Shown here piece by piece: positions 11,956 to 64,000 of a stretch of 64,000 bases of DNA. Below the pieces are notes generated by a model. That model searched no databases. It was not told where the DNA came from and saw only the letters and a list, made by a program, of their open reading frames with translations. This stretch comes from Tubulanus polymorphus (taxonomy: Eukaryota > Animalia > Nemertea): contig NC_134030.1 of the NCBI RefSeq assembly GCF_964204645.1, positions 21,660,210 to 21,724,209 on the forward strand, read 5' to 3'. Position 1 is the stretch's first letter. Every line of letters starts with the position of its first letter. Made by a program: the position numbers and the translations under genes.

Positions 11956-12467
11956 AGTAGTCACTCGGAAGTCGATTGTGGTGAAAATTCAACATTGGTC
12001 CCGTGGAATCTGAGTCAACCTTTTAATGTTACTGAAACGCAACATTTTTTACGCCCGTTGTAACTCGATGGTTATGTGGACTTTTTTCGACGCAGTTATT
12101 AATTTTAATGTTTGTATTTTTTTCTACCCGGTCCGCGCGCGAGTCTATCTATATCTTGTGATGTAAAGTGAATCTGACTTTCTATCAATGCAAAAAAAAA
12201 CACTCAGTTTTTATTATTCGATGTTTTATGTTTGAAAAACAAATGTTAAATGTTATATATGTATAATTGTCCACTGAAATTATTTATATACGCACAGTGT
12301 GACTGTATCAAGATTTCGGAGTCTGTTGATTGACTCTTGAGTCAGTGGAAAAGTCCTGTTCACACGACTCCTCAATAGTCGGTGAGTTCTATTATATTGA
12401 CTCTCAGAGTCAGAAAATTCACGGAATAGTCGCGCTAAGATGACTCCAGATTCTGAGATAAGTCCCT

Positions 12468-12606
12468 GGGGCCGGTTGCAGAGTCATGGCTTTGACTTAA
12501 GACCAGTCTAAGACCAACTTAGTTCTATAGTCAATCGAACAACTTAAGACCAGTCTAAAGATTTAATACCACTTTTGGACTTAAGTCACGACTGTGCAAC
12601 TGGCCC
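12468..12606. mobile_element. PIF/Harbinger-like MITE with CWG target duplication
   Basis: CTG|GGGCCGGTTGCA..TGCAACTGGCCC|CTG. A near-identical copy at 26038-26175 is flanked by CAG/CAG. Relatives occur at about 28337-28660 (internally expanded), 52912-53040, 60058-60167 and 46940-47022. Confidence 0.75.
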
Positions 12607-13667
12607 CTGGAACTGAGTTTATATCAAAGTCGATGAAATTTCCCTGGAACTGGGTTCTATTGAGGTTCATGACTCTCTCAATACAGGGCTCCCATTGAAA
12701 TAACCGAAGTCATGTATGCATTCCAAATATTGTAAAATCTAGGTTGACTCAACAGTCTCAAGTTAGCTCATTTCTGATGTAAACATCTCCATTGCAGTAG
12801 TTATACATGTAGTTTGACTCCAAACAAGTGTTAAAGCTAGAGTCAAAGTTATAACTGTCTTACAGGGTTCTTACAGGTTTTAGAAAGTTTCGGAAAATGG
12901 GAATGTTTTTTTCCAGACCCTCGAAAATCTGTGGTATGTTTTTCTTTGCTCGTTGGCTATGGAAAAGAGAAGGAAAATTAGAAAATGGTCTCAAAACAAA
13001 ATGTTCCATCTATTTCGAATTTTAGTCTATGCGCCTAAAATTTGATAACAAACTTTATAAAAACACTTGGTCAATGGTATTGATGATTGGCACTTATTTA
13101 CTTTTAATGGGCCTATATTGCATGTTAAACGTTTTTTTTTTTATATCCTCAACCCGCTAAGCGCCGCGCAGGGAATTATAAGCGGGTTCGATGTTTCTTT
13201 TTTCCAATGGAGGAGAGACCAGGGAAGAACCTTCGACCAAGAAACTCTGTCGCCGCTGAACCCCGGATTGACGAAACCATTGACCGGGTTGGCGATATGT
13301 AACTTAGGGGTTCTGGAAAATTGTAGTTTGAATATGGAAAAGTTTTGCTGAATGAGATAATACACTTATGGCGATAAGGATGATGTTTAATTTAAGGGGT
13401 TTATGGAATTATTGTCATCTGAGTAATGAGATGAAATCAGGAAACTTGCAGGAACTCTGGTACGTATTTTGCGGTACTAGGGTTAGGGATAATAAGGTAT
13501 AGTTGTTGTTCCGGTAGTGGATCTAATTCATTTATTTATTGGTTTCATAATTTTTTTGATTTTTGATCCGTTCGTGGATACTCGATAGCGTGAAAGTAGG
13601 AAATGTATTTATATTCTTTGAGTTGGCGCGAAATCTGAAATAACCAACAGAAACAAGTACATGTATT

Positions 13668-16227: not shown

Positions 16228-16568
16228 CATCCTCCCTCTGCAGGGACTCGAACCTGATGGCATCGCTACACTCAGCCACGGCACGAACCCCTGCATCAGT
16301 AGACCGGGTGCGCAGGTACATGCGCAGCTTTCCGAACGAAAACTGGCGGCACCAATCAGATTGCTCGTTGTATAATCGTTGAGGCAAATTTCAAGGAAGA
16401 ACTATAAATGGGAAAACCCGGGATAAAATAAAACGGGATTTCTGATTGGCTAAAAATCACATCATCTGAACTGCGCATGTATCTGCGCACACGGTCGATT
16501 ATGGCACTGGGTTTCGTGCCGTGGCAATCTCGATGCCATCAGGTTCGAATCCCTGCCGGGGGAGGATG
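16228..16568. mobile_element. Non-autonomous DNA transposon (MITE) with CAT..ATG termini, imperfect TIRs of about 100 bp and an 8-bp TSD (P- or hAT-like)
   Basis: The TSD CGCTCTAC is at 16220-16227 and 16569-16576. The TIR is CATCCTCCC..GCAGGGACTCGAACCTGATGGCATCG / CGATGCCATCAGGTTCGAATCCCTGC..GGGAGGATG. A second full copy is at 49636-49967. Confidence 0.85.
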
Positions 16569-19085: not shown

Positions 19086-20665
19086 GGTTAGAGTAAAACG
19101 CTCGTACGCGTACCGATCTTTCGTGTTCGAATCCCAATTTTTCGGTGTTATTTCTAAGTCCCATGTATTCGCGCATGCGCATTGGTTGTTTCGTGGATGC
19201 TCTGAAACATTAAACAACTTGCTATTTCATTGAATTTTGGAAGCGTTAACCAGTCCGAAATCGCCATTTAGGCAGATGAGCATGCGCATTACGGGAGGTC
19301 AGCCCGTGATAGAAGCGAAATGGACAGAACTATGAGTCACACTTGTAGACTGGTTACCTGGAGACCGATAACCAGTCTAAAGGGGAAAACCCAGAAGCTA
19401 TTGATAGCGTTAACAACCCTGGCACAAATTCCATTTAGATTTATTGGCAGAGCAGAATTTTGACCGTTTTTTTAATGATTATTCGAACACGACAGCAAAC
19501 TAGTGACCTTTATTCACTTATCTTTCATTGAATAGTGAGTTTCAAACCCAAACTTAACATGAGAACAGGATAGGTGGGCCTGTTTAACCGCTATTTCGAC
19601 CCCTCTAGTCAGTCAGACTACGCCCCACATCCAGTTTTCATCAACTAGAAATGCTTCAATTTGAAAGTGAAACTAGATAAAGTCTATTTTTGTCTGACAC
19701 CGATTATTTAGGGTTATTTCCGCTAAAATTTTGAATAAATAGACATTAGGATTCAGTTCCACAGTCGTTAGTTAGAGTTATAAACTCTTAATAGTCTTTC
19801 AGACTAAAATTGACCTCATCCTTTTAAAAGAAAAAACTGACGCAAATCTAATACTTTCATCCTCGTGGCCTTAGTTAAAATCAGTGACATTGTCAACGAG
19901 TGATCGTCTCTTAGTTTTGAGTCAAATCTTATCTCAGATCTGTGAACGGTCGGACTCTCGTATTTGGGCCATATGCCACAAATTAGGCAAACTATTTTTC
20001 AACGATCCGATGAATTATTATTTTTCTGACTGAACTTCGCTTACCTTCTTAAACCTCTCTACTACAGATAGCCAGAGCCGGAGGGAATACCTCCCCTTCA
20101 GCCTCGGCCTGTCAGGCCTACACTAAAATGATTAGCGACGAACTCGTACGGAATCGGTGATTTTTATCTAACGGAAGTTCGATGACACGCCATCTTGTGG
20201 CCTATTCCCCGGTCCCGAATTTTGTTGACAGAATTTTATCAGTACTGATAACGGAAATTTAGAAATAATTCCAAATATCCTCTGATAATCACCGTCGGCA
20301 GTCGAGTTTTATCGGCGGTTAGATTTAAACGCGATCAAACAAAACCCGCGACTGAATTCTATTGATAACGAGCACGTGCCAAATTTGGCCCGGAACAACT
20401 GTTCACACGGGTGCCAAATGGGCCCGAGCCTGTTTGGCCCAGGCCAAATTTGGTACCGACCAAAAACGTCGGACCAGCAGGGTCTTAGCCAGAAATGAAT
20501 ATGTACCTATCAAAATTGGAACATCCGAAATAATCAGCCAGTCCAACTCAAGTGGTGCCGCAGGCGACACCCGAGGTGCCCGAGCCTAATTTTAGCACCA
20601 GAAAAATGATTGCATTTGAATTACAAGTTCTTATATTTCTAGGTTGTATGAATGGATGAATCAAT

Positions 20666-23600
20666 ATGAGGAATCAGTCGAGGAATCTGCAGCAGTGTTT
20701 AGTGATCATACTGTTGATTCTAATCCCGAACAACAACAATCCACAAGGGTTTAGAGTCAAGAGAAATACCGGTAAGATACTTTGACACCAGTGCAAGAAC
20801 ATTTCATCGGAGTATCGTGGAAAATGTATTACGTAAAATAAAACTTAAAGGGCAAATGCCATCAAAATAGAATATTGTGTAAAATTCATTTTCAAATGTG
20901 ATGTATTCACAAATATCAAATATGGAACTGGTTTGAATTTTAACGTGATAAAACGACGCAATAAATCGCGAGAGACGATTGGAGTTGTACTGGACAGTGT
21001 GAATGTATTGAATTTTAGTTCAGCCATTACTGAGAAATATGACTTTTAAATCGCTTAGATTTAGCGCTGTAGGTCAGTGAATACCGTGAACAAATGATGT
21101 TTATTTTATTGATCATACATAGGCTACGCGTACTAGCGCGCACATGTGCTTGTGTTGATTGTCGTAGTTAACATCATAAATAGCGCCACCCGTCGGTTGA
21201 ATATGAACTATACGCACGGAGTGAAGGATAAATAGATAACTATTCCGCTAACTATTACGACTAATTTGTGCTCCTTTTTTCAATAAGTCACATCTCGGGT
21301 CGCTATATGTACTAAACTAAAGTTTCTTCTGGTAAAAAAATCGCGGAAAGTACAATTTTGATGGCATATGCTCTTTAACACCAGACTTGGAAACTTGTAT
21401 TTGAAGTACACAATGATAGTAGCTTATCAACCACTTGAACTGGTAAGGCAAAACAAAAATGATACCTTGTTTCTCCGCGCAGCGGCCGGGTCGTTTTATT
21501 GTAAAATATGATAATATTTGTAAACAGTTCATTTTTATAGCTGCCCGGGGTCTGTTCACAACCTCTTCACTACTGCAGATAAGGTAATGCCCCTCACCAG
21601 GACTGGACAGTGTGAATGTATTACCGGGTACAAGAATATTACGTATATTGTGTATTTGATATTTCAGCACCTGATGGAGTTGTACTGAACAGTGTGAATG
21701 TATTACCGGGTACTAGAATATTACGTATATTGTGTATTTGATATTTCAGCACCTGATGGAGTTGTACTGGACAGTGTCAATGTATTACCGGGTACAAGAA
21801 TATTACGTATATTGTGTATTTGATATTTCAGCACCTGATGGAGTTGTACTGGACAGTGTGAATGTATTACCGGGTACAAGAATATTACGTATATTGTGTA
21901 TTTGATATTTCAGCACCTGATGGAGTTGCACTGGGCAGTGTGAATGTATTACCGGGTACAAGAATATTACGTGTATTGTGTATTTGATATTTCAGCACCT
22001 GATGGAGTTGTACTGGACAGTGTGAATGTATTACCGGGTACAAGAATATTACCTATATTGTGTATTTGATATTTCAGCACCTGATGGAGTTGTACTGGAC
22101 AGTGTGAATGTATTACCGGGTACAAGAATATTACGTATATTGTGTATTTGATATTTCAGCACCTGATGGAGTTGTACTGGACAGTGTGAATGTATTACCG
22201 GGTACAAGAATATTACGTGTATTGTGTATTTGATATTTCAGCACCTGATGGAGTTGTACTGGACAGCGTGAATGTATTACCGGGTACTAGAATATTACGT
22301 ATATTGTGTATTTGATATTTCAGCACCTGATGGAGTTGTACTGGACAGTGTCAATGTACTACAGGGTACAAGCATGTTACTGTCGCAGGAAGGTAAAACT
22401 GTTAGTATTACCTGTAAACAGAGCAGCTCTACAGCAACTGGTGTTGAATTCCAGCTACTAGTGAACAGTGGAGCAGGAGGCACCTGGACTCTGTTACATA
22501 CAGCATCAGCACCAGTTTGGGATATTGTACTTGACGCTGGAAAACAGTATAAATGTGTAGCCAAGAATTCTGCTGGAAAGAAGGAAAGTCAAATCTACCA
22601 ATCGGATGTAATCAGTGAGTATTGCCCGTTCTTTTTGACGTAAAGACACAGGTAAACACAAAAAAGTTAAGAGGAAAATCGATCATAGCATGATTGAAGA
22701 AGCCATGTTTTCACATGTGTATCCATAATAAGGGTGGCTCCAAACATGTCTGAATCACGGCAATATGACCAGTCTTAGTTTTCATTGCTATTGTGGATGT
22801 TTTCATTTTTTGATACGGATTCTCTGTGGTTTGATTTCATTCGTCATAAATGTTCACTAATTCATCGTTGTAACTGAAAACCATGTGAAACTGAGAGAAA
22901 CTGTTAATTTAACTTAAGAACCATCCGCGCTTGCCAGGGATTGATTGCTTCCTTCTGAAACTCACTCCCTACCTGGCCAGTCCAATACATCTCCCGAGAT
23001 TTCTTGGGCACATAGGTTGCGGAAGCCAATCAGACACATTGTTTTTACCAGCAGATTCGCTTCGCGTTTGGTTGGCTGGATATATAGACTGGTGACCGCT
23101 TATTGGGCAATGCAATTGACCAATGAAGGGTTTGCGGCCAGGGTTTGTGTTAACGTGAGCTTAAGCGGGCGGCAATCGAACCCTGGCAAGCGAGGATGAT
23201 TCGAACAAAATGCAAAGGACCTGAAACCTCACTGTTTCAGCTCTTAAAAATCGTTCTAATATTTTCATTTATTTGTGTAGAGTTGCCATTTTAAATTTGT
23301 ATTTCATCAATAAAACATAGAGACCGATAATACTTTCATCAGGTGAATGAGTCAAGTACTATCTGTCTCTATGTTCTACTGATTCATTCATTCAGTTCAT
23401 CTTAAATCGATTTAAGAGTTGATGCTTTTCGTTTGCCAGTTTCACTCCGATATAGATTTGATTTGTGAATGTTTTCATGTAAATCTATTATAGGTATAAA
23501 GATAAATGAAAATCCGTGTAAGGCAGCTCAATTCCAACCATCACTGGCTTGTACTTGTAAAGCCACTAGTAAGATTGGTAATCCAAACATCAAAGTAAAA

Positions 23601-26600
23601 TGGTATGCTGATGGAAAACCTAATGATTTAACGGAAATTGACAATATCCGCGATCAAGGGGTAAATACTCCGCTGAAAGATGGAATTATCAACAGGAATC
23701 AGATAGGTTATGAAGCTGTGAAGAAATCAACATTTATTCAATGTCGATTGAGGAAATACAATGAGATACAACTACAGAGACCACTTCAATTTCAAATACT
23801 ACATCAAACTGTGATGGATGTTACGTGTAAGTAAAAAAGACATGTTTATGCCCCAGGCTTGATTTTAACTGAGAGGGGATAGATTTACCCGCGTCGGAAT
23901 ATGCCGTCGCTGCCGCGAGTGACGTTGACAGCCTGGAGGACGCAATTGTTGACCGATTTTTTTCAAACTTGGTACACAACTGGGGCATCACTTTGGCCAG
24001 AACCATATCATAAAGTGGGTCGATGCGGTTCACATTATGGTCACCAGGGGCCGCCATGAGAAACGACGTTAACAGTCTAGAAGCCGCTGTTGTCGACCGA
24101 TTTTCTTAAAACTTCATACATGAGTAGGGCTTCACTTGGGGGAACCCTATTTGAGATTAAGTTGATGCGATTTAAATTATGGCCACCAGGGGAAAACAGC
24201 CCAGAGGCTGCAACTGTTGATCAATTTTTTGATACTTTCTAACGCATTTACCACAAACCCTGTAACTTCACGTGTGGCGGTGAATTTCGGGTCGCTTTGC
24301 CTCATTCTAGTTATGAGAGAATTTCCAGACAATATCATATTGACGTCTGGTATGAGTTAAGGATATTTATACAGGAATGTCCCTGTCATATTTTAGATTG
24401 CCCGACAAACGACTTATGTCGCATGAGACCTGAACAAGTTTCAGGAGTCACTCAAACGTGTCCCCTGATAATCAAACATTAATTAAACATTTATGGGAGG
24501 GTTTAAGTAAAACTTTGTACTGCCCTGGCTTTTGTACAGCCTGATATCAGCCAAACACCTGCCACCACGAATGATATATTTTTCCATATTTAATGGATGA
24601 ACATTTTCTCATAGTTAAACGGGTCCAGTAGAAATATGAAAAGATGATAAAATGATTAAGTAAATAATTAATGATATCTAAAAAGTACATTTATATCTTT
24701 TTCTTTCAGATTTTCCCGATAGAATTCAAAGACGAGGTACTTTCACCGGACAACCTGATATTAAAACTGAAGGAGAAAATGTAGACTATATTTGTAGAAC
24801 AGAAGGTGGGAGGCCCGATCCTACAGTGATATACCAACAGAAGAGAAGAGGTTCTGAACAATGGGAAGCAATTCCTCCTGATCCACAAACTAAAAGAGTA
24901 GCACTCAAAGGGCATTTAAAAGGTTTTGACACGACCTACAAGTTCAAAGCTAATTTCAAACAGCACAATGGAACGTCATTTCGATGTGCTGTAAAGGAGA
25001 ACCTTACGTTTCCAGAACCTCAGCAATTTAATCCAATCATTGTTCATTGTAAGTAACAGATTTATTTGTTGTATTTGAGAAATCTTCCTAAGAATAACAG
25101 CATGGGTGGATCTAGGATTTTTCAAAGGGGGGGGTCTGCGAGACGGGCGATCGAAAATAATTTTATAAAATTGTGAAAAATCCTCGGGAAAATGGTGGAA
25201 TTCGATGAAATCTTGCTGCTGAGTCATAGTGCTGCGGTTACGATGAAGTGATGATAATTCTAATGAGATACCCACACGATTCATGGGGAAATGTATTTAT
25301 CTAAAATGTGTCATTATAATTTACAATTTTGGTTGTATCTTAAACGTTTTCGCAATCGCAAAAATTCAGATTATTTTGATTGGTTAAATGACCGTTTATC
25401 GGACACAGACTATAAAGTTTAGCGGAATGGCTGTAACCGAACGAAAAAGAGGGTCTCATGACAAATATGGGTCGGATCTTCACTGATATAATGACATATA
25501 CACAGCGCTGGGGTGATAGCTGCGCTACTGTAAGATCTGATTCTGAGGCAGAGAAGTACCAATCTCATGGGGCCTACTGCAAATAATCTCAAACCATTTT
25601 CATCTTCGGTTTTCCATAGACAAGTTTTTGAAAATGGCTCATAGATTTGAGTGGAAAGGTCAAACTATCAGATAGTTTTTTTTTTTTTATCGTGGGTTTT
25701 TGTCGACCATTTTCATCTTCTTAATTCAACAAACAGTGCGAGTTATCAGAAACGCTTCATAATTTCGATGTGAAAAGATTTGCTGATCTCGCGCTGAGAC
25801 ATGCTTGCTCGTGGGGGCGGGGGTTTCACGGTTGCGAATTTGATTCCTCAACCGAGTCAATCATGACCTAGCGCGCCGATATCTGCCGAACTGCCGTGAA
25901 GATTAGAGCTATTTACATGAAAAGACCTTTTACAAATTTTTCGGGAGGCATTAGAGGGGGTACAGCTAGCCACCCTATTCACCCCCTAGATCCGCCCCTG
26001 ATAAATGTATAAAGTTTTCCCTGCTACGATACCCCAGGGGCCGGTTGCATAGTCATGGCTTAGACTTAATACCAGTCTAAGACCAACTTAGTTCTATAGC
26101 CAATCTAACTACTTAAGACCAGTCTTAAGATTTAAGACCACTTATGGACTTAAGTCACGACTGTGCAACTGGCCCCAGGCCTTTGTAGACCTATCCGCCC
26201 TTAGTATAGTCAGGAGCGTGGCAGGAATTTCACAATGTCAAGTTCCAATCCCTACCAAGGGAGGAACGTGGCAGAGTCTCACGATGTCATCAGGTTCGAA
26301 TCCCTGCTGAGAGAAGATGGGTCTACTATGACAGGGCTTAAGAACTGTGCTAGGTCAGATATTACTTTTACTAATGTTTTGTTTGTTTTTCAATCAGATT
26401 TTGCTGCACCAGTTTACAAGAAATCCAGTGAAAATGAAACAAATGCAGCGTATATTGTAACAGTCAATAGTAACCCATTGACTCAACAAGTTACATGTGA
26501 CCCTCCAGCTGTCGTTCAAAAACTATCAAACTCTCAGTGGAATATAACGATACCTCTCGTAAATAGTACCACAACTGACTATAGAGGGCAGTGTTTGGCT

Positions 26601-29600
26601 GATGGTAACAAAGAAAGGGTCATTGATGTCGCTGGTTATCATCACGCCGGTCCAACTGATGAACCAGGTAAGATTCCGCGTCAGAACTGGACTTGTTGAC
26701 CCCACTCAGCGCGGGACTTAGGCAAAACGTTTTGTGAAAAACGTGTTTTCTGTTTTGGCGAAACAAATGTTATTTCGTGTGCGGCTAGGTTAATTCTCAA
26801 TTTGAAGCTAAGCTCAGGTCCGTATCATGTTGTCGGAAACGGTCTGCGATGTTTTCATCGGGAATTCTGAAAATTTGATGCGTTTTAGGCGCATTTCCAG
26901 CGAATGTTAGTGAATAGAGTTCATATGAAAAAGTCGCTGAAACACAATGCGTAATCTAATGAATTTTCTTTGACAAAATTAGCGGAACTCGGGATCTTCG
27001 TGGGTTCGCACCCAACACACCCCCCTTGGGTACGGGCCTGATACTATTTCTAATTACAGGGAATATCATGCAGGTGTGAAGTGGCCTAGTTTACAAAGTA
27101 GACCTACAAATCAAAACACGCTCAGTAAAAATGAGACACCGCGTGTGGAAAGTTGTTTATCGATACTTTGGTTTTTTGGATTTTGTACGTAATGTGTCTT
27201 CGATGGTGATTTCTAGGTCATTTCTGCCAACTTTTCAATGATTGAAAAGTTGTATTTTTGAAGAAAAGTTTGATGTACTTTTTTGACATGATGAAGGTGA
27301 AGTTCCTTGTTCCTTTATATTGTTTTACCAATGTATGTGTTATTTTGAATCGCGCCAATATTTGAATTTATAAAGTACTTTGGTAAACAAGGGTCAAGGA
27401 GTATGAACAAGTTCTATTTTCTAAGACCTAATCAAAATGGCCGTAGCCAATCAGTGATGAGTATTACTACCACTGTTCTTACGACTAGATGACCGCGTCA
27501 TAATTCGACCTGAGCTTAGTTTAAGTCGTCTAAATCTAAAGCCATCATCTGGGTAGTCACATAACTGTGGGTCAATTTTTGTTTGCAATTTAATTCACGA
27601 AAATTGTAAAAAAGATTTCGATACGTCAACATAGTGGAGTCTTGTGATGTCATCAGATTTGAATCCCTGCACAGGAAGAACAGGATGACTTGACTCTCAG
27701 TATTAACTGAACTCAGCGTATTACATTCAAATAATACTTTAGCATTTTCTACTTTCTATTTCGAAACTGTTTGACCCGATCGAGGAACTGTTAGTTGTTC
27801 GCATTTCGAAAACAACTTATTTACTTTATTTAGACGCTATTTGAGCTTTGAAATTATGGAACAATAAATTTTTGTTTGACCTAGTTAATTATTCAATTCA
27901 ATTGCTGTTACTTTTATCAATAGTTACAATAGAATAATTTCTAGCTTTATATAATTCAATTGCTGATTTGTTTGAATTTCAGTTCCAGATGAAGGGATTG
28001 GGGGAATAGTGTTTGGTGTACTGATATTACTGATTCTGATAATACTGTTTATACTGTGTCTTTGTGGCTGCTGTAAGTTTGACCTAAAACCATCATTTAA
28101 TCTGAAAAACAATAACAGACAAACTTGAAATAAAATACTGTGTTATTTCTAATTGACAGTGCGGTGCAGAAAACCTGATGATCAACTGTGTAGATGTGGA
28201 AATTGTAAGTCCTGTAATAATTCATTATACATAATGCTTAAAATTGAAAAAAATAGTTTACAAGGCTGGAGGGAGTCAAGGGTCCCAAGGTGGTACACAG
28301 TTGATTCTCGATTCTCAGTCAAAATTTTAAATTTCGGGACCCTAGTTGCAGAGTCTTATTCAAAAAGTGGTCGTAAAGTATTAGACTGGTCTTAAATTGT
28401 TAGATTGGTTATAGAAACCAAAATGAGCTTAGACTGATCTTAAGCTGTTAGATTGGCTATAGAACCGAAATCAGCTTAGACTGGTCTTAAGCTGTTAGAT
28501 TGGTTATAGAAACCAAAATCAGCTTAGACTGATCTTAAGTGGTTAGATTGGTTATAGAACTAAAATGAGCTTAGACTGGTCTTAAGCTGTTAGATAGGCC
28601 ACAGAACTAAAACTGTCTTAAACTGGTCTTGAATCTAAGCCATCACTGTGCAAATGGCCCTATTACAAAACATTTAGTTCATTGTCGATTGAAATGATTG
28701 TACACTGACAAGACTGTTCCCGACAGTGGCAGATAATTGAGAGTTCATGAGATCTGAAATTATAGCCTCACCTCTAGATATGCTTGATATTGCATACATG
28801 GGTTCAAGATCAATATAATTTTGTGTGCTCGCATTTGAACGGAAAAATGATAATTCAAAAAATAATTAGTCACTCCAAACATAAAAATACTGTATTTTGT
28901 TTTCCAGTGCTGTGTATCTATAGAAAACCTGCTGATAAACTGTTTAGATGTATTTGTCGCACCGAGGACTCGTCGGACGATGAACTATGTGTTTGTTGTT
29001 GCTGTAAGTGTCATAGAAAAATACCATCGTAGAATCGTAGAAAGGATTATCGCAAATTAGAATAATTTGTTTGTTTGTTTTAAGTGACTTGCAAATTACC
29101 TGCTGCCGATGAACCTGATAGTAAGGATGCCTCCTCAGATGAACTGTGTCATTGTTGTTGCTGTGAGTTCTATATATAAACTGATAATGATTAATAGTCA
29201 GTAACTGTAGAATAAACTGTTGTATTATTTCTATTTGCAGTGGTGTTGAGAAGTGAGCCGTGTACATGTAATTGCTGTAAGTTGTATTAACATTGAAAAC
29301 ATTGATGATTGATCCTGCAAAATTAACTGTTATTGTCATTGGACATTCATACAATTGAATTCAAAGTCTAAGAGTGTTTGAGAGTCTTCGTTCACAGTTG
29401 GTATTGATGTTAATAATCTTCAGACCGAGTTCATCGTAGATGATTAAAATCAGTTTTGTTTAAACACGAGAAAGTTTCACAGTATCATCAGTTCAATTGT
29501 GGCCTCAAAATGAATCATAGCATTAGCTACGTTTATGGATAGCATTAATATTATCCTATTTCTCTGGTGGATCAGTTGGTTAGGTTTTGTTGTGTGTCAG

Positions 29601-49635: not shown

Positions 49636-49967
49636 CATCCTCCCTCTGCAGGGACTCGAACCTGATGGCATCGCTACACTCAGCCACGGCACGAACCCCT
49701 GCCATAGACAACCATGTGCGCAGTTACATGCGCACTATCCGAACCAAAACTGGCGGCACCAATCAGATTGCTCGTTGTATAATCGTTGAGGCAGATTTCA
49801 AGGAGGAACTATAAATGGGAAAACCAAAAATAAAACGGGATTTCTGATTGGCTAAAAATCACATCATCTGAACTGCGCATGTATCTGCGCACACGGTGGA
49901 TTGTGGCAGGGTTTCGTGCCGTGGCAATCTCGATGCCATCAGGTTCGAATCCCTGCCGGGGAGGATG
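49636..49967. mobile_element. Second copy of the CAT..ATG MITE family
   Basis: Highly similar to 16228-16568. The flanks AGGGGGG and AGGGGGT resemble an imperfect TSD. Confidence 0.85.
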
Positions 49968-52789: not shown

Positions 52790-53142
52790 ACATCCGTCGA
52801 CGAACGAATTCAATTTTCAGTTCTTGTTTTGACATACAAATGCATTCACTGCCTAGCTCCACCCTATTTACAATCGAATTGTACACATCAAGCCGTTCAT
52901 TACGATCCTCCGGGGGCCGTTTCAATAGACAAGGCTTAGACTTAAGACTGGTCTAAGACAAACTTAGTTCTATAGCCAATCTTACAACTTAAGACCAGTC
53001 TTAAGATTTAAGACCACTTTTGGTCTTAAGTCTTGACAATGGTCTATTTCTCGTGCCGCATGTGGAATAAGCTTCCCCTCTCTAATAGGGCATCAGACAG
53101 TTTAGCGATCTTCAGACGAAGTCTGAAAACATATCTGTTTGT
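52790..53142 (+). mobile_element. L2/CR1-group LINE 3' fragment interrupted by a MITE
   Basis: Translated pieces ERIQFSVLVLTYKCIHCLAPPYL, RSLRSS, WNKLP and SDSLAIFRRSLKTYLF match the typical ORF2 C-terminus. Confidence 0.75.
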
Positions 53143-56745: not shown

Positions 56746-56986
56746 GACCTGCTAGTCTCTTAGACTCGGTGTACAGTAAGTTATTTGCAATAAAAAAACA
56801 TTAAACTCTTTTTGATGGAACCAATAATTTCCTATACTTTTTACGTACAGATATTTACATCTTTACAAGTGAACACGTCTCGTCTAAAGACTAAAATGTC
56901 CTTTGGAAGATCATTGTTTACTATTGTTTGTATGTGACGATGATCTGAAGTTTGTTTCTATATTTCTAGGTAATGAATGAATCAAG

Positions 56987-59900
56987 ATGAAGAATCTATG
57001 GAGGAATCCGCAGCGGTGTTTAGTGATCTGCGTGATTATACTGTTGAATCTCATGGCGTACAACAACAGCCCACAAGCGTTTAGAGTCAAGAGAAATACC
57101 GGTAAGACACCAGTGCAAGAACATTTCATCAGAGTATATATCTGAAAAATATATTATGCATGTATTATCATACGTAAATAAAACTTATCACCAGACTTTG
57201 GAAACTTGTATTTGAAACATCTGGGACAAAATGATAGTAGCTGAATAGTCCACTTGAACTGATACATTTACCTCGAATGAAAACCCACAATCTCTCAAGT
57301 GTTTTATATTTTACCTTTAACATTTTAACTATTCAATAATTGTATTTTATCTTCTAAAACTCCATCTACACTTGATTCTTATACCCGGGTTATGCGTCTC
57401 CATTACACTCGAAATATGGGTTCAATGAAGAAAGAAATGTTTTTTAGAAACCGCTCTTGAAAAAGTATGGTACTGTTCCGCGGTCCCTTTCTCTATTGTC
57501 TTTTTCCTCTATTACAAACTCCGGTCCCTGGCGAGACCTCGAACACAGAAACCCGAAAACCAAGGAATAAAAGGAACTCCGGATTTAAATATGATAATAC
57601 TCAACTTTAATTCTACAATTTTAACTGAACTTTAGTCTCAACAATTTATAAAATTCCCTACCTTTTAATTTAGAATTTTGTTACAAATCCCGCACACAAA
57701 AAGATGCAATTCAACCGGATAGCCGAAAGTTATCTGTTCTATAGTCTTCTAATGCTTCCCCTGAAAATGCTTTCTAAAAGAGTCCGCTCTCTCTCGAGGT
57801 GCGGCCCCTTTTATACGGCTGCGTCCACACCCAAGAAAAATCCAGAACCCTGCTTGCGGCCAGCCGTAAAAGGGAACGAGCAACCAACGCAGCACCACGA
57901 CGCAGAGCTGGGGTCCTGATTCCTAGACTTTTCATTCGCTGCTAACTTTAACCCGACCCTCGACGTCATGATACCTGCCGGTCTGCTCTCCTTCAGGAAG
58001 GAATATCGAAACAAACTAAATTTTCATAGTACCCATGCGCCATCTAGCGTAAAACATTCTAAGTATTTCAGTACTTTGCGCAAACAGTCGTTTCGAAGTG
58101 TATTTAGTCGATCAATATCGATTAATATATTACTCTAATTGCGCGGACCACCTTGCTACACTAAAACGGCCATAGTTTTATCATCAAATGGAATTTTACC
58201 ATCAAATTCTCAGATAATCATCAAAACATACTGCAGAATAGAAATTCTACACTCATACACATTATTGAAGTACAGAAACTGACAAAAATATGGAAGCATT
58301 ATCATAGTACAGTCAACCCCCGAAATACCGCCCTCCCATATACCGCAAACCCGCCTACCGCCAGGTTTTCACGATGTGCGTCTATATACAAATACATAGT
58401 AAAACACCCCCGATATACCGCTATACTCTCTCTATACCATCAAAATCGTTCTGCACCGATGTGGGCGCAGTATATCGGGGGATGACTGTAGATTAAGGAG
58501 ATACTGTTTGAGAGCAAGTTTAAAACAGGAGGGGATCAAAATGAACTTCAGAAAGAAACTTACGGCAATAAACTTGGCTTTGAGTAAGGTTTGATGAATC
58601 CGGCCGCTGGTTAACACCGCAAGCTCCTCTGAGAATCTCCAGGCAGTTTCACATCAGTGAATTGCTAATTATACAACACTAAAACGATGATAAATGTTTG
58701 CATTGCAAGGAATCCAAGAATATACTTACGGGAGTGTTATATCAATTGAAGGATCACTTTACCTTTAAGCGATCAGCAACTAAATATTGCATTCAAAATT
58801 GTCAGTTTGATCGTTAGAATTAGTTTGAATATTGACCGAGGCAGCATCACAGGATACAGTGTTAAAATCATATGGATAATGCGTGTGAATATTATATTTT
58901 AAAAACATCAAATCAGATAATTGTTTATTTCTTGTTTAACTTCTTCAAACGGAAGACAATTTCCTTATGCTTAAGTCAGGGGCTGCGGTTGCTGTGAAGT
59001 TGGTTTAAGTTTCCCAGTGAATGAAATTGAGATGTTCATTGGTCAATTTTGACTAACAATGGCTTTGACTATAGAAAGCTCTATTGCCATTCATTTCAGC
59101 ACCTGATGGAGTTGTACTGGACAGTGTGAATGTATTACCGGGTAGATGAATATTACGCACATTGTGTATTTGATATTTCAGCACCTGATGCAGTTGTACT
59201 TGACAGTGTCAATGTATTACCGGGTACATGAATATTACGTATATTGTGTATTTGATATTTCAGCACCTGATGGAGTTGTACTGGACAGTGTCAATGTATT
59301 ACCGGGTACACGTGTATTACTGTCGCAGGAAGGTAAAACTGTTAGTATTACCTGTAAACAGAGCAGCTCTACAGCGACTGGTGTAGAATTCCAGCTACAA
59401 GTGAACAGTGGAGCAGGAGGGGCCTGGACTGCATTACCTACAGCATCAGCACCAGTTTGGGTTTTTAAACCGGAGGCTGGTAAACAGTATAAATGTGTGG
59501 CCATTATATCAGTCGGAATTAAAGAAAGTCAGTTCTACCAATCAGATGTAATCAGTGAGTATGCATCACTTATCAAATAATGTTTGGAAAATAGAAAAAC
59601 TTGTTTTGGTATCTGTGTATCTGATCATGATGATTAAAATCAGTTGTGTTTAATGCATGAAAGTTACTCAAAACCAGTTGTCTTTAAAATTAAGCAAAGG
59701 TGGCTCCAAACATACCCAAATCATGGCAATGGGAGAGCTCCGATGGTCTTAATTTTCATTAGCTAAGATTATACATTGGGACTTTCCCCTGCCTTCCACT
59801 GCTGGTTTGATTTCATCAGTCATAGGTGATATTTATTTATTTATTCATTTATTTCAGAGATAAATTGCAACAATGTGAACAATGTTATTGTTAGTACATA

Positions 59901-62900
59901 ATGTTGTAATATAAAACTTGGGTTTCAGAAAAAGCAAGGCTTGTATAAACTGAAACCCTGAAAAGGAATGCTAAATGTACAAAAAGTAGTAGTTGGCCGA
60001 AAGGGAACTACTATTCAAAATTAACTGCGATAAATACAGAGATATTTTGATACACCTGGGCCCAGATCCACAGTTCTGAGTTAAGATTTGACTCTGGGTT
60101 AAAACATTATTATGAACTAACTTTAACTCAGAGTCAACTCTAACTCACGACTGTGAAACTGGGTCCAGTAATGTTAAATATAAATTTAGCAGTTTAAAAT
60201 GAAATGAATAAAGGAGGATAATCAATTAATAAGTAGATACATAATGGCGTTTCATCTTTGATTTGAAAATATATTCAAATTTTTACTGGTTTTTATTGAT
60301 TGACTAATTTGATTCCAAAGTTTGGGACCCTTTACTCTCAATGAAAAATTTCTAACATGAGTATGGTAATGACTTAAACGGAGATAAGTCCTCGATCTGG
60401 TGTTGTGATTATGAATTGATGCATTTAACTCAAAAAGATCTGCGAACGTAGAAGGTTGTGTGAAATAATGACTGCCCAACAAGAAGATTGTTTACATCAT
60501 GGAGTTTTAAGATTTGAGCAGCTTTGAATGAATATCAATTTTACTTCATTTTTCAAATTTCCTAATTCACGGTACATTGATATTATGGGGCTTTTTTAAT
60601 AGCGGTTTTGGGCGCAGTATATTTTAAATATACTGCACCCAAAAACTGTTCACATTCGAACACAAGATGCCAATAACAACTTGGACAAGTTTCCTGATCG
60701 AAGTCGTTATCAAAATCTAAAATTTCGATGATCACCTCCCTTAGTAATAATTTTAGTAGTTTTTCGCACAAATGAAATACATTTTCATACATCGAAAAAT
60801 AGTAGTTTTCAAAATTTTCTGTGACCGAAATTTCATAAAATGCTATTCGTATTTCGCAGAGCAGATACCATTATAGGTTAAACTAGTTTATTTAGGATAC
60901 GAGCTTTCGTTACTAACGTCTAGTAGGTTCATCAGGTGAACGAGTGAAGTACTATCTGTCTCTATGTTCTACTGATTCATTCATTCAATTCATCTTAAAT
61001 CGATTTAAGAGTTGATGCTTTTCGTTTGCCAGTTTCACGGACTCCGATATAGATTTGATTTGTAAACGTGTTCATAATCTGTTATTGTAGGTATAAAGAT
61101 AAATGAAAACCCGTGTAAACTGCATGAATTCCAACCATCACTGGCTTGTACTTGTAAAGCCACTAGTAAGATCGGTAATCCAAACATCAAAGTAAAATGG
61201 TATGCTGATGGATTTACTGAAGGTTCAACAGAAATTATAAATATCCGCGATCAAGGCGTAAATACTCCGGTGAAAGATGGAGTTATCAACAGGAATCAGA
61301 TGGATTATAGAATCATGATTTACTCAACATTGATTCAATGTCAGTTGAGGAGATATAATGGTATAATTCTACCGAGACCACTTCAAAATCAAATACTACA
61401 TCAAACTGTGATGGATGTTACGTGTAAGTTAAAAAAACATCGTTTTCTATCGGTTATGTGCAAGTTATGTAATATTTTCATAAGATATCGGACTGAATTC
61501 TGGTATGAGTTCAGTATATTTGTACGGAGTGTCCGCATGCGAATGTCCCTGTCGTATTTTACGATGCCCGACAAATGACCAACCAAGTTTCAGGACTCCA
61601 CGGTGTCTTAGTCGGGCACTATCCTGTCATTAGAGTGAATTTTTGTCGAGACACTATTGTCAAGGAAACCTGACACGACTGCGGAACTATCCCGATTTAC
61701 AAACACCAACAACTTCGAATGCAAAAGTTTATGAAGTCTATGTACGAGTAGAATTAAAGATATAGTTATGACATCGTAGCACCCGAGACCGCGATGTGGT
61801 CGCGCTGACTCCTGTCTGGAAAGAGAGAGGGAGAGGAAGAGGGAGAGGGAGAGGGAGAGGGAGAGGGAGAGGGAGAGGGAGAGGGAGAGGGAGAGGGAGA
61901 GGGAGAGGAAGAGGGAGAGGGAGAGGGAGAGGGAGAGGGAGATGGAGAGGGAGAGGGAGAGGAGAGGGAGAGGGAGACTCCAAGCCTTTATAATAGATAA
62001 TGAAAAAAATATACTTACGTCTTTTTCTTTCAGATTTTCCCGATGAAATTCAAAGACGAGGTACTTTCACCGGACAACCTGACATTAGAACTGAAGGAGA
62101 AGTTGTAGACTATATTTGTAGAACTTTGGGTGGGAGGCCCGATCCTACAGTGATATACCAGCAGAAGAGAAGAGGTTCTGAACAATGGGAGCCAATTCCT
62201 CCTGATCCACAACCTCGTAAAGTACCTCTTAAAGGGCATTTAAAAGGTTTTGACACGACGTACAAGTTCAAAGCTGATTTCACACTGCACAATGGAACGT
62301 CATTTCGATGTGCTGTAAAGGAGAACCTTACGTTTCCAGAACCTCAGCAATTTAATCCAATCATTGTTCATTGTAAGTAACAGATTCATTTGTTGTATTT
62401 GAGAAATCTTCCTAAGAATAACAGTATGGGTGGATCTAGGACTTTTCTAAGGGGGTGGCTGACAGCTGAGACGCACTGAATCAGCGAACTGAAGAAAATT
62501 TAAGAAAAGCTTGAAAAATCCTCGGGAAAATGGTGGAATTCGACGGCATTCGAGCGAAATAATGACATCCTGCTGAGTCATAGTGCCCGCGCGGGTAGTA
62601 TGTGGTGTTGGTAATTCTAATGAAATACCCGCACGATTCATGGGGAAACGTATTTATCAAAATTTTGTCATTATAATTTACAATTTTGGTTTCGGGAATT
62701 TTTGACACGGATTGGGAAAAATTCAGATAATTGAGATTGAGAAAATGACTGTTTACCGGACACAGATTATACGGCCTAGCGGAATGGCTGTAACCGAATG
62801 ATAAGTGGTCTCATATCGGGTGGAGCTTCACTGGTAAAATGTATGTATAAATGTATGATGAATTCGCTACTGTTGTTCTGGTTCCGAGGCTTATTTTACT

Positions 62901-64000
62901 GCGGCGAATTCGGACGCGAAATAGCAGGACCTAATAACAAATATCGGGTGGAGCTTCACCAACATAATGCATGTATAATTGTATACGGCGATGGATTCGC
63001 TGCGCTACTATAAGTTCCGATTCTGATTCAGAGGCAGAGAATGAACAATCTCATGGGGCCTACTACGAACGATCCCAAACCATTTTCATCTTTTTAATTC
63101 AACAAACAGTGCGAGTTATTAGAAACGTTACATAAGTCAATGTGATAAGTTTGCTGATCTTGCGCTGAGACATGCTTGCTCGTGGGGGGGGGGGGGGGGG
63201 TTCACGGTTGCGAATTTGATTCCTCAATCGAGTTAAACATGAACAGCGCCGATATTTTTGATCAAAGTAATGATTTAAGGCGAAAAACCCTTTTCAAAAT
63301 GTTTCGGAAGGCATAAGAGGGGGTGGGGGGGGTATAGTTAGCCACCCTATTCACCCCCTAGATCCGCCCCTGATAACAGTATAAAGTTTTCCCAGATACA
63401 ATACAAACCCCAGTCCTAGTAGTCCAGACCTATCCGCCCTTAGTATAGTCGCGACCAAGGCGGGAATCTCACGATGTCATCAGGTTCGAATCCCTGCCGA
63501 GCGAGGAACGTGATCGAGTCTGACGATGTCATCAGGTCCGAATCCCCGTCGAGGGAGGATGGTTCTTGTCTAGTACCTAGCCGTCGTTCCCCAAACAACT
63601 GTTGTAGGGAACCCGTAACGACGACTGGTATTCAGACTAGGATGGCTCAACCTCTGACAGGGTTTCAGAACTTTGCTAGGTCAGATATAAGTTTGCTAAG
63701 GCAGTATGCTTGTAAACAACCTTCACTAATGATTTGTCTTTTATCAGATTTTGAACCAGTTTACAAGAAATCCAGTGAAAATGAAACAAATGCAGCGTAT
63801 ATTGTAACAGTTAATAGTTACCCATTGACTCAACAAGTTACATGTGACCCTCCAGCTGTCGTTCAAAAACTATCAAACTATCAGTGGAATATAACGATAC
63901 CTATCGTAAATAGTACCACAACTGATTATGAAGGGCGATGTTTGGCTGACGGTATTAATGAAAGGGTCATTGATGTCGCTAGTTATCATAACGCCGGTCC
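56987..64000 (+). CDS. Tandem paralog of the Ig-superfamily receptor (5' part; runs off the window)
   Basis: Exons 56987-57101 (MKNLWRNPQRCLVICVIILLNLMAYNNSPQAFRVKRNT), 59264-59554, 61091-61423, 62034-62372 and 63748->64000. The Ig exon sizes (291/333/339) and phases match the first copy and the frames are open. Confidence 0.88.
57474..58160 (-). mobile_element. Possible solo LTR
   Basis: The minus strand begins TGTAGC and ends GGAACA, with TATAAAAG at about 57815 and ATTAAA downstream. No matching TSD is seen. Confidence 0.3.
58310..58488. mobile_element. Tc1/mariner (pogo-like) MITE
   Basis: TA|CAGTCAACCCCCGA ... TCGGGGGATGACTG|TA. Confidence 0.8.
59830..60540 (-). mobile_element. CR1-group LINE 3' end with (AAAT)n tail and a nested MITE
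   Basis: The ORF2 end reads HNHNTRSRTYLRL..FSLRVKGPKLWNQISQSIKTSKNLNIF. An (ATTT)n tract is at 59830-59853 and a MITE at about 60058-60167. The element is absent from the paralogous intron. Confidence 0.75.
61822..61977. repeat. (GAGAGG)n hexamer microsatellite
   Basis: A directly visible purine run of about 25 copies. Confidence 0.95.

Follow-up and report, generated by a model that had tools for sequence, protein, structure and literature searches.

Patchy exon divergence and short-tract mosaicism in a tandem family of immunoglobulin-like receptor genes in the ribbon worm Tubulanus polymorphus

Introduction

Two neighboring copies of a gene that differ by clusters of amino-acid replacements, beside intron DNA that has hardly changed, raise the question of whether selection has driven their exons apart or whether such a pattern can arise in another way. 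We addressed this question in a stretch of 64,000 nucleotides (nt) from the nemertean Tubulanus polymorphus (assembly GCF_964204645.1, contig NC_134030.1, positions 21,660,210 to 21,724,209 of the forward strand). This stretch is referred to here as the window, and coordinates are counted from its first base. In it lie, in tandem, two paralogs of a multi-exon gene with immunoglobulin (Ig)-like domains, copy A (20651-26700 onward) and copy B (56972 to the window end). An earlier reading of these letters (the original prediction) had reported that the paralogous Ig domains diverge by clustered replacements next to a nearly identical intron, and had proposed that positive selection acts on ligand-binding surfaces in a tandem receptor family.

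In our analysis, the pair belongs to a family with a mosaic structure, in which copies A and B have changed to very different extents and the conserved framework of the domains is constrained. The interpretation that we favor, to which we give slightly better than an even chance, is that this is a mosaic birth-and-death family with exchange of short tracts, in which copy A is a fast copy and diversifying selection acts at a few codons.

Results

The Ig1, Ig2 and Ig3 exons lie at 22324-22614, 23494-23826 and 24710-25048 in copy A and at 59264-59554, 61091-61423 and 62034-62372 in copy B, all on the forward strand and all of phase 1-1. Exons were analyzed singly. Copies A and B differ at 17 of 96 amino acids in Ig1, 25 of 110 in Ig2 and 12 of 112 in Ig3, and Ig2 has six codons with synonymous changes only. 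The manual counts of the original prediction (about 17, 25 and 12, with about six synonymous changes in Ig2) proved exact on this recount, and all of the patches that it had named were recovered, namely (A/B) DIVLD/VFKPE, AAQ/LHE, KPNDL/FTEGS, IGYEAVKK/MDYRIMIY, EIQLQ/GIILP and TKRVA/PRKVP. Its claim that the replacements are concentrated in patches also held, both in the adjacency of replaced codons (20,000 permutations; p = 0.035 for Ig1, 0.003 for Ig2 and 0.098 for Ig3) and in an excess of codons with two or more base differences (27 observed vs. 11.9 expected under scatter). Codons with synonymous changes only tended to lie within two codons of a replacement (14 of 22 vs. ~38% expected), which is the pattern that imported tracts or multi-nucleotide events would produce. 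The codons at which A and B differ fall where other paralogs vary (entropy 1.1-1.2 vs. 0.5, p down to 6e-7). Pairwise ratios of nonsynonymous to synonymous divergence (dN/dS) between A and B were 0.41-0.47 in Ig1, 0.94-1.22 in Ig2 and 0.52-0.57 in Ig3, with an exon dS of 0.13-0.26 and with dN about equal to dS in Ig2; the median for pairs across the family was 0.55-0.61.

The proposal that the two copies are part of a tandem receptor family was supported by genome searches with each exon, which found a large family of Ig-fold genes, at least 27 of them with an Ig1-Ig2(-Ig3) arrangement. Loci of the family are at 18.06-18.43, 21.68-22.09, 22.28-22.37 (minus strand) and 22.76-22.82 Mb of contig C6 and at 0.30 Mb of C9, and more distant members form a group at 20.4-20.6 Mb. 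Every exon match of at least 57% identity to the query was open, and stops were confined to four remote matches of the Ig3 type (40-47%). A tandem array of ~12 units, repeating every ~37 kb, begins with copies A and B.

Comparison with the other paralogs gave a polarity to the differences. A and B differ at 111 bases. Changes private to A account for 50 of these (36 replacements and 14 silent changes) and changes private to B for 10 (five of each), and at the other 51 both states are carried by other paralogs, so that this last group consists of shared cassettes rather than new substitutions. The DIVLD cassette of the A Ig1 exon is also present in C6:21.870 and C6:22.026, and the VFKPE cassette of the B Ig1 exon, or its variant VFKLE, is present in six others, while LHE and FTEGS are found in most family members. 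Such cassettes (DIVLD, VFKLE, KIVPE, LHE and FTEGS) recur among members that are not neighbors. KPNDL, IGYEAVKK, EIQLQ and TKRVA, on the other hand, are private to A. The end branches leading to A (0.089, 0.19 and 0.068 for Ig1, Ig2 and Ig3) are longer than those leading to B (0.025, 0.006 and 0.017), with the A Ig2 exon the fastest. The closest paralog of B changes from exon to exon, being C6:21.984 for Ig1 (92%), C6:22.278 for Ig2 (91%) and C6:22.766 for Ig3 (96%), and is never A. The Ig3 exon of B is near the family consensus, and at all 12 of its codons that differ from A the B residue recurs in other paralogs.

Copy A has 12 private residues in Ig2 and seven in Ig3, compared to family medians of two and one. 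Three of those in Ig3 (R18K, P53A and P60T) affect columns in which every other paralog has the same residue. There are 127 such columns over the domains, and only three of the 20 A-private residues fall within them (Fisher p = 0.019). Copy A is still constrained, and its conserved framework has been kept.

Recombination and mosaic tracts are statistically supported across the exons of the family. The pairwise homoplasy index (PHI) test with w = 50 was significant in all three exons (p <= 0.001), and with a 100-nt window it was significant in Ig1 and Ig2 and not in Ig3. In a permutation run test, 67, 70 and seven pairs had p < 0.01 for Ig1, Ig2 and Ig3, vs. ~3.7, 3.7 and 2.5 expected. The mosaic character of the B Ig2 exon is plain in this comparison, as its 5' half is identical to C6:22.027 at 63 consecutive polymorphic sites and its 3' end to C6:18.410 at 47. 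The same test showed that the A Ig1 exon shares the DIVLD tract with C6:21.870 and C6:22.026.

A donor search for the private patches of A covered the three in Ig2 (KPNDL, 23613-23640; IGYEAVKK, 23703-23730; EIQLQ, 23763-23792) and found no donor in the whole assembly at up to three mismatches per 24 nt. Additional data came from four sequencing runs, which were examined as contigs only. One of these runs, X1, represents the other haplotype or another individual, with intron differences of 1-2%. A 254-nt contig from X1 matches A without a difference for 183 nt, A-only patches among them, and departs from it at 23769-23791, where CAA is replaced by ATT, CAG by CCG and TTT by ACT. The six substitutions, which lie within 23 nt and are all nonsynonymous, turn the A peptide EIQLQRPLQF into EIILPRPLQT, and two of the three changed codons are back in the state that is common in the family. 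Patch 4 of the A Ig2 exon is thus an allelic, clustered polymorphism, as known from one alternative haplotype contig.

Codon models, which the original prediction had called for, were fitted with our own codon-likelihood code, with relative branch lengths fixed at the values from IQ-TREE; in branch and branch-site runs, kappa and scale were also fixed. The family-wide ratio (omega, model M0) was 0.43-0.59. Site models on 24-29 paralogs per exon preferred M2a over M1a, with likelihood-ratio test (LRT) statistics of 25.3 for Ig1, 38.2 for Ig2 and 17.9 for Ig3, and assigned 4-9% of codons to a class with an omega of 3.2-3.5. When exon halves were rerun with separate trees, the LRT values were 9.7 and 0 for Ig1 and 6.7 and 17.4 for Ig2, so that the M2a signal persisted in three of four halves. 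Recombination is present in these exons, and the site-model tests may therefore be inflated and include false positives.

About two to five codons per domain had a posterior above 0.95. Ig1 contributed codons 16 and 41 and Ig3 four codons, and the others lay in IGYEAVKK/MDYRIMIY and just 3' of KPNDL. Among the six named patches, only IGYEAVKK/MDYRIMIY exceeded 0.95 in both the whole-exon and the half-exon analyses; TKRVA/PRKVP had one such codon in the whole-exon run, the only one in which it was tested, and DIVLD/VFKPE, AAQ/LHE, KPNDL/FTEGS and EIQLQ/GIILP had none in either site analysis. The class with an omega of ~3.2-3.5 that the site models prefer overlaps the named patches only partly. 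Omega on the A branch was 0.20 for Ig1 (below 1, p = 0.0016), 0.92 for Ig2 and 0.78 for Ig3, the latter two not significantly different from 1 or from the background, and on the B branch it was 0.99, 0.62 and 0.17. The branch-site test on A was marginal (LRT 3.9 for Ig2, 3.4 for Ig3 and 0 for Ig1), and such tests are misled by multi-nucleotide changes. Positive selection on ligand-binding surfaces, as originally proposed, has in its favor a few codons that the site models place above 1 and the location of the A/B differences at family-variable positions, and against it pairwise dN/dS values of 0.4-1.2. Values at or below 1 with scattered sites had been named as one outcome that would refute it, and we found values of about 1 or less, but at sites that are clustered.

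The intron before Ig2 accounts for the other half of the pattern. The block of near-identity is at 23335-23493 in A and 60928-61090 in B (both on the forward strand). Between 23335-23465 and 60928-61062, 128 of 131 bases are identical and there is one 4-nt indel, and the final 28 nt of this ~160-nt stretch have an identity of only 84%. Sliding alignments placed an abrupt edge at 23334/60927 and showed that the Ig1-Ig2 and Ig2-Ig3 introns are otherwise unalignable (30-60% identity, large indels). On the 3' side of Ig3, 77 nt have 95% identity, 25049-25459 has 86%, and later alignable pieces have 80-82%. The divergence of alignable intron (80-86% identity) is therefore about that of the exon synonymous sites (dS 0.13-0.26). 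The description of the adjacent intron as nearly identical is correct for ~160 nt before Ig2 and fails as a general contrast, as the introns are mostly unalignable. Overall, the exons are far better conserved than the introns and are not outrunning the neutral rate. The oddity of this locus is one short conserved scrap of intron, and not unusually fast exons.

The block is found at the same place in only three paralogs, A, B and the C6:22.341 Mb gene on the minus strand, whose copy is 90% identical to that of B. Among the three, it is 90-98% identical and their exons differ much more; between A and C6:22.341, for example, the block has 96% identity (K = 0.04) and the Ig2 exon has a dS of 0.28. 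A proximal motif of ~60 nt is partly retained in five further paralogs, and most others have unrelated sequence at this position. The center of the block (23383-23432) matches, at 84-86% identity, a dispersed repeat of which the genome has at least 37 copies, and the block therefore resembles a shared insertion more than a family-wide functional element. It also carries a palindrome, TTAAATCGATTTAA, in both A and B, and at two of the repeat loci the match is adjoined by an inverted copy. In the Ig2 exon tree, C6:22.341 groups with 18.387 and 22.288 (support 99/94), and forcing A, B and C6:22.341 into a clade costs 40 log-likelihood units (approximately unbiased (AU) test, p = 0.054). The history of the intron block conflicts with the exon tree.

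The Ig-like identity of the exons rests on invariant residue triads, a Pfam match of A Ig3 and a structural model of Ig1. The triad of Cys (B strand), Trp (C strand) and Cys (F strand) is invariant in the family in Ig2 (C21, W36, C83) and in Ig1 (C30, W54 and a Y-K-C77 motif), and in Ig3 it is present in all aligned paralogs (C28, W51, C92). In profile searches, the Ig3 domain of A matched C2-set_2 at 24.9 bits (Pfam cut-off 21), and that of B, a C2-set-like Ig domain, scored 16.2; Ig1 and Ig2 had matches to ig, I-set and Ig_2 that were all below threshold. A sequence search of the PDB with the exons gave no match below E = 0.1. The predicted model of the B Ig1 domain has eight strands and a mean predicted local distance difference test (pLDDT) value of 76.6. 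Its fold corresponds to the beta-sandwich of solved Ig domains, in that its top 50 Foldseek matches were mostly Ig-like (antibody V domains, Fc-gamma receptors, twitchin Ig, RAGE, PD-1), with TMq of 0.49-0.70 and E values of 1.1e-3 or weaker. The Ig2 model was of low confidence (pLDDT 56.5), and sites were placed on it by strand order alone. By this order, the Ig2 patches follow strands A, C, E and F, which would locate them at both ends of the domain.

The duplication that gave rise to the pair is visible in the window as a match of 56972-64000 to 20651-26653 at an offset of ~37.3-37.6 kb. Both copies have an identical exon plan, with all junctions in phase 1 and canonical AG/GT splice sites, and the signal exon, Ig1-3 and exon 4 have open reading frames in both. 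Exon 1 encodes the signal peptide and is at 20666-20771 in A and, with the start codon, at 56987-57101 in B (forward strand; 80% by blastn). In B it ends in phase 1, and its final G forms an Ala codon with the CA of Ig1. Exon 4 is at 26398-26667 in A and at 63748-64000 in B, where it continues past the window end (both forward). At the start of exon 4 (26398-26412 vs. 63748-63759) there is an in-frame 3-nt indel, with FAAPVY in A and F-EPVY in B, a deletion in B.

Transcription was evident in another of the four runs, X4, in which exons were covered and unique intron was not. At one loose end of an X4 contig, the final 14 nt of an Ig3 exon are followed directly by 26398, which also confirms the acceptor of A exon 4. 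The coverage of exons and this spliced end show transcription and splicing of the family. As short X4 contigs cross-map among paralogs, transcription can be assigned to the family and not specifically to A.

Directly upstream of Ig1, each copy has a series of 82-bp tandem units, at 21662-22323 in A and 59094-59263 in B (forward strand). Each unit duplicates the 3' splice site of Ig1 and ~50 nt from the start of the Ig1 exon. There are nine Ig1-type acceptor motifs in A, eight inside the units and a ninth (22318) that is used by Ig1, and three in B, two inside and a third (59258) used by Ig1. The 82-bp unit can be read as a 42-nt phase-1 micro-exon and a 40-nt intron; contigs from X4 run unspliced across unit borders (e.g., 21823-21882).

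Several other repeats were noted in and around the two genes. The Ig2-Ig3 intron of B contains, directly 5' of Ig3, a long simple repeat (61738-61993), readable as (PL)n or (GR)n, that A does not have. In an intron of A, contig depth at 26013-26211 was very high in all four runs and reached 244,000, which indicates a very abundant repeat; related copies are at 12464-12610 and 52909-53055. An element of 330 nt, outside the Ig exons, is 93% identical between the gene units (49636-49967 vs. 16228-16568), with inverted partial copies nearby. Elsewhere in the family, Ig1-Ig2 exon pairs are tandemly repeated within a few kb at C6:18408821-18411592 and C6:22277305-22288550, an arrangement suggestive of genes that encode at least four Ig domains.

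Discussion

We propose that gene conversion or unequal recombination swaps tracts of tens of bases to ~130 nt between members of this family. Most members are homologous only in their exons, and exchange would therefore carry differences into exons as blocks that include synonymous changes. The intron scrap, common to only A, B and C6:22.341, would have stayed near-identical. Together, exon exchange and a shared scrap of intron would give the local look of a conserved intron beside a patchy exon. Copy A has in addition accrued ~5 times as many private changes as B, mostly replacements at positions that vary in the family, and the two to five codons or so per domain with high posteriors may have been replaced repeatedly, in agreement with diversifying selection. 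What we observed directly is the mosaic structure, the unequal change of the two copies and the constraint on the framework; gene conversion as the mechanism, and a role of the family in recognition, are what we infer from them.

Several of our results weigh against this interpretation. The codon models ignore recombination and multi-nucleotide mutation, and the outcome of the run test depends in part on how variability differs between regions. The AU rejection of the clade implied by the intron is only borderline, and in Ig1 a clade of A and B was not rejected (AU p = 0.275), so that we claim no exon-level mosaicism from Ig1 alone. Function, and not recent exchange, may have kept the intron scrap. 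For the private patches of the A Ig2 exon, we considered and rejected simple conversion from a paralog in the assembly, as no donor was found there at up to three mismatches per 24 nt.

The pattern might instead have been produced by point mutations that arose after the duplication at ligand-contact loops and were fixed by diversifying selection in both copies, with the neutral intron left unchanged. Clustered replacements at family-variable positions would be expected in that case, as would the preference for M2a in all three exons, the marginal branch-site results on A in Ig2 and Ig3, the near equality of dN and dS in Ig2, and an X1 allele whose six changes are all nonsynonymous. We nevertheless regard this as unlikely. 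Pairwise dN/dS is 0.4-1.2 and A-branch omega is never significantly above 1, B has barely changed, and nearly half of the differences are states that are found in other paralogs. Moreover, DIVLD/VFKPE shows no omega above 1, most of the intron is unalignable rather than unchanged, exon dS is close to the divergence of alignable intron, and the branch-site tests are prone to error from multi-nucleotide changes. Somewhat less likely again, in our view, is that copy A is a redundant gene or incipient pseudogene that is drifting under relaxed constraint, with patches formed by chance or by multi-nucleotide mutation. The A-branch omega values of Ig2 and Ig3, indistinct from 1, agree with such drift, as do the excess of private residues in these domains (12 and seven vs. 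medians of two and one), three of which hit invariant Ig3 columns, and the X4 transcripts are not assignable to A specifically. Against drift, the five 5' exons of A are open with canonical splice sites, its private residues avoid invariant columns (p = 0.019), and its Ig1 omega is significantly low (0.20, p = 0.0016).

The remaining two possibilities we consider improbable. The intron block may be a functional non-coding element, for splicing or regulation, that is itself under selection, in which case it would be uninformative about the neutral rate or about exchange. Its 90-98% identity in three paralogs with divergent exons and the partial retention of the ~60-nt proximal motif in five more would fit such a function, and the unrelated sequence at this place in most paralogs, the dispersed repeat at its center and its abrupt edge would not. 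The absence of a template in the assembly for the searched A-private patches, together with the polymorphism of one patch between identical flanks, brings up another idea, to which we give an equally small chance. The A-private patches may have arisen by untemplated, clustered germline mutation, or may be long-lived balanced allelic lineages at a histocompatibility-type locus of nemerteans. If true, either alternative would provide the first molecular candidate for graft recognition in ribbon worms.

On the favored interpretation, that of a mosaic birth-and-death family, a lophotrochozoan array of Ig receptors would evolve as the immune receptor clusters of vertebrates do, by duplication, short-tract exchange and a few fast sites. 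Our literature search found no paper that describes a nemertean Ig receptor family, and a search for precedents of the intron and exon contrast returned nothing usable. The locus also carries a caution, in that a patchy exon next to a conserved intron, seen locally in a single gene pair, does not amount to evidence of positive selection when many paralogs can act as donors. Patch 4 of the A Ig2 exon offers a concrete, testable case of patch-wise allelic variation.

The mode of evolution itself is already well known from vertebrate MHC and KIR genes, and has been discussed for the Alr, fuhc and Sp185/333 families of invertebrates. The vertebrate MHC and the KIR/LILR clusters evolve by birth and death, with interlocus gene conversion and with positive selection limited to certain sites. 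The nemertean family resembles them in its tandem arrays of Ig-fold receptors, in short cassettes that recur across paralogs, in exon and intron histories that differ, and in a few codons with omega above 1 on a constrained framework; it differs in having no detectable sequence relationship to them and in a polymorphism seen in a single alternative haplotype contig. The classic cases of exons that evolve faster than introns are the snake-venom PLA2 and conotoxin genes. As in those genes, an intron is locally better conserved here than the adjoining coding sequence. However, in PLA2 and conotoxin genes whole introns are conserved and dN exceeds dS over the mature peptide, whereas in the nemertean pair the conservation extends over ~160 nt of intron and dN/dS is about 1 or less.

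Among invertebrates, the allorecognition family Alr of Hydractinia is a clustered family of the Ig superfamily (IgSF) with weak scores against standard profiles (PMC9546547), and the fuhc-linked receptors of Botryllus form another clustered IgSF family (PMC12582321). The nemertean genes appear similar to both in their large clusters, divergent Ig-like domains, weak profile scores and probable membrane-distal variation. The Alr and fuhc loci are genetically tied to fusion and rejection and are extremely polymorphic, whereas the nemertean family is known from sequence alone. Graft rejection in nemerteans has been reported for Lineus (PMC2248247), with no gene linked to it. If population data showed high polymorphism of the patches, the family would become a candidate for self/non-self recognition in this phylum. 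A further parallel is the Sp185/333 (SpTransformer) family of sea urchins, a clustered immune-type family whose diversity is tied to repeats, segmental duplication and recombination (PMC5103432). Sp185/333 proteins do not have an Ig fold, and their diversity consists of element patterns and short tandem repeats within one exon, unlike that of the nemertean genes. The two families would be alike in that diversity is linked to repeats, duplication and recombination, and not to point mutation alone.

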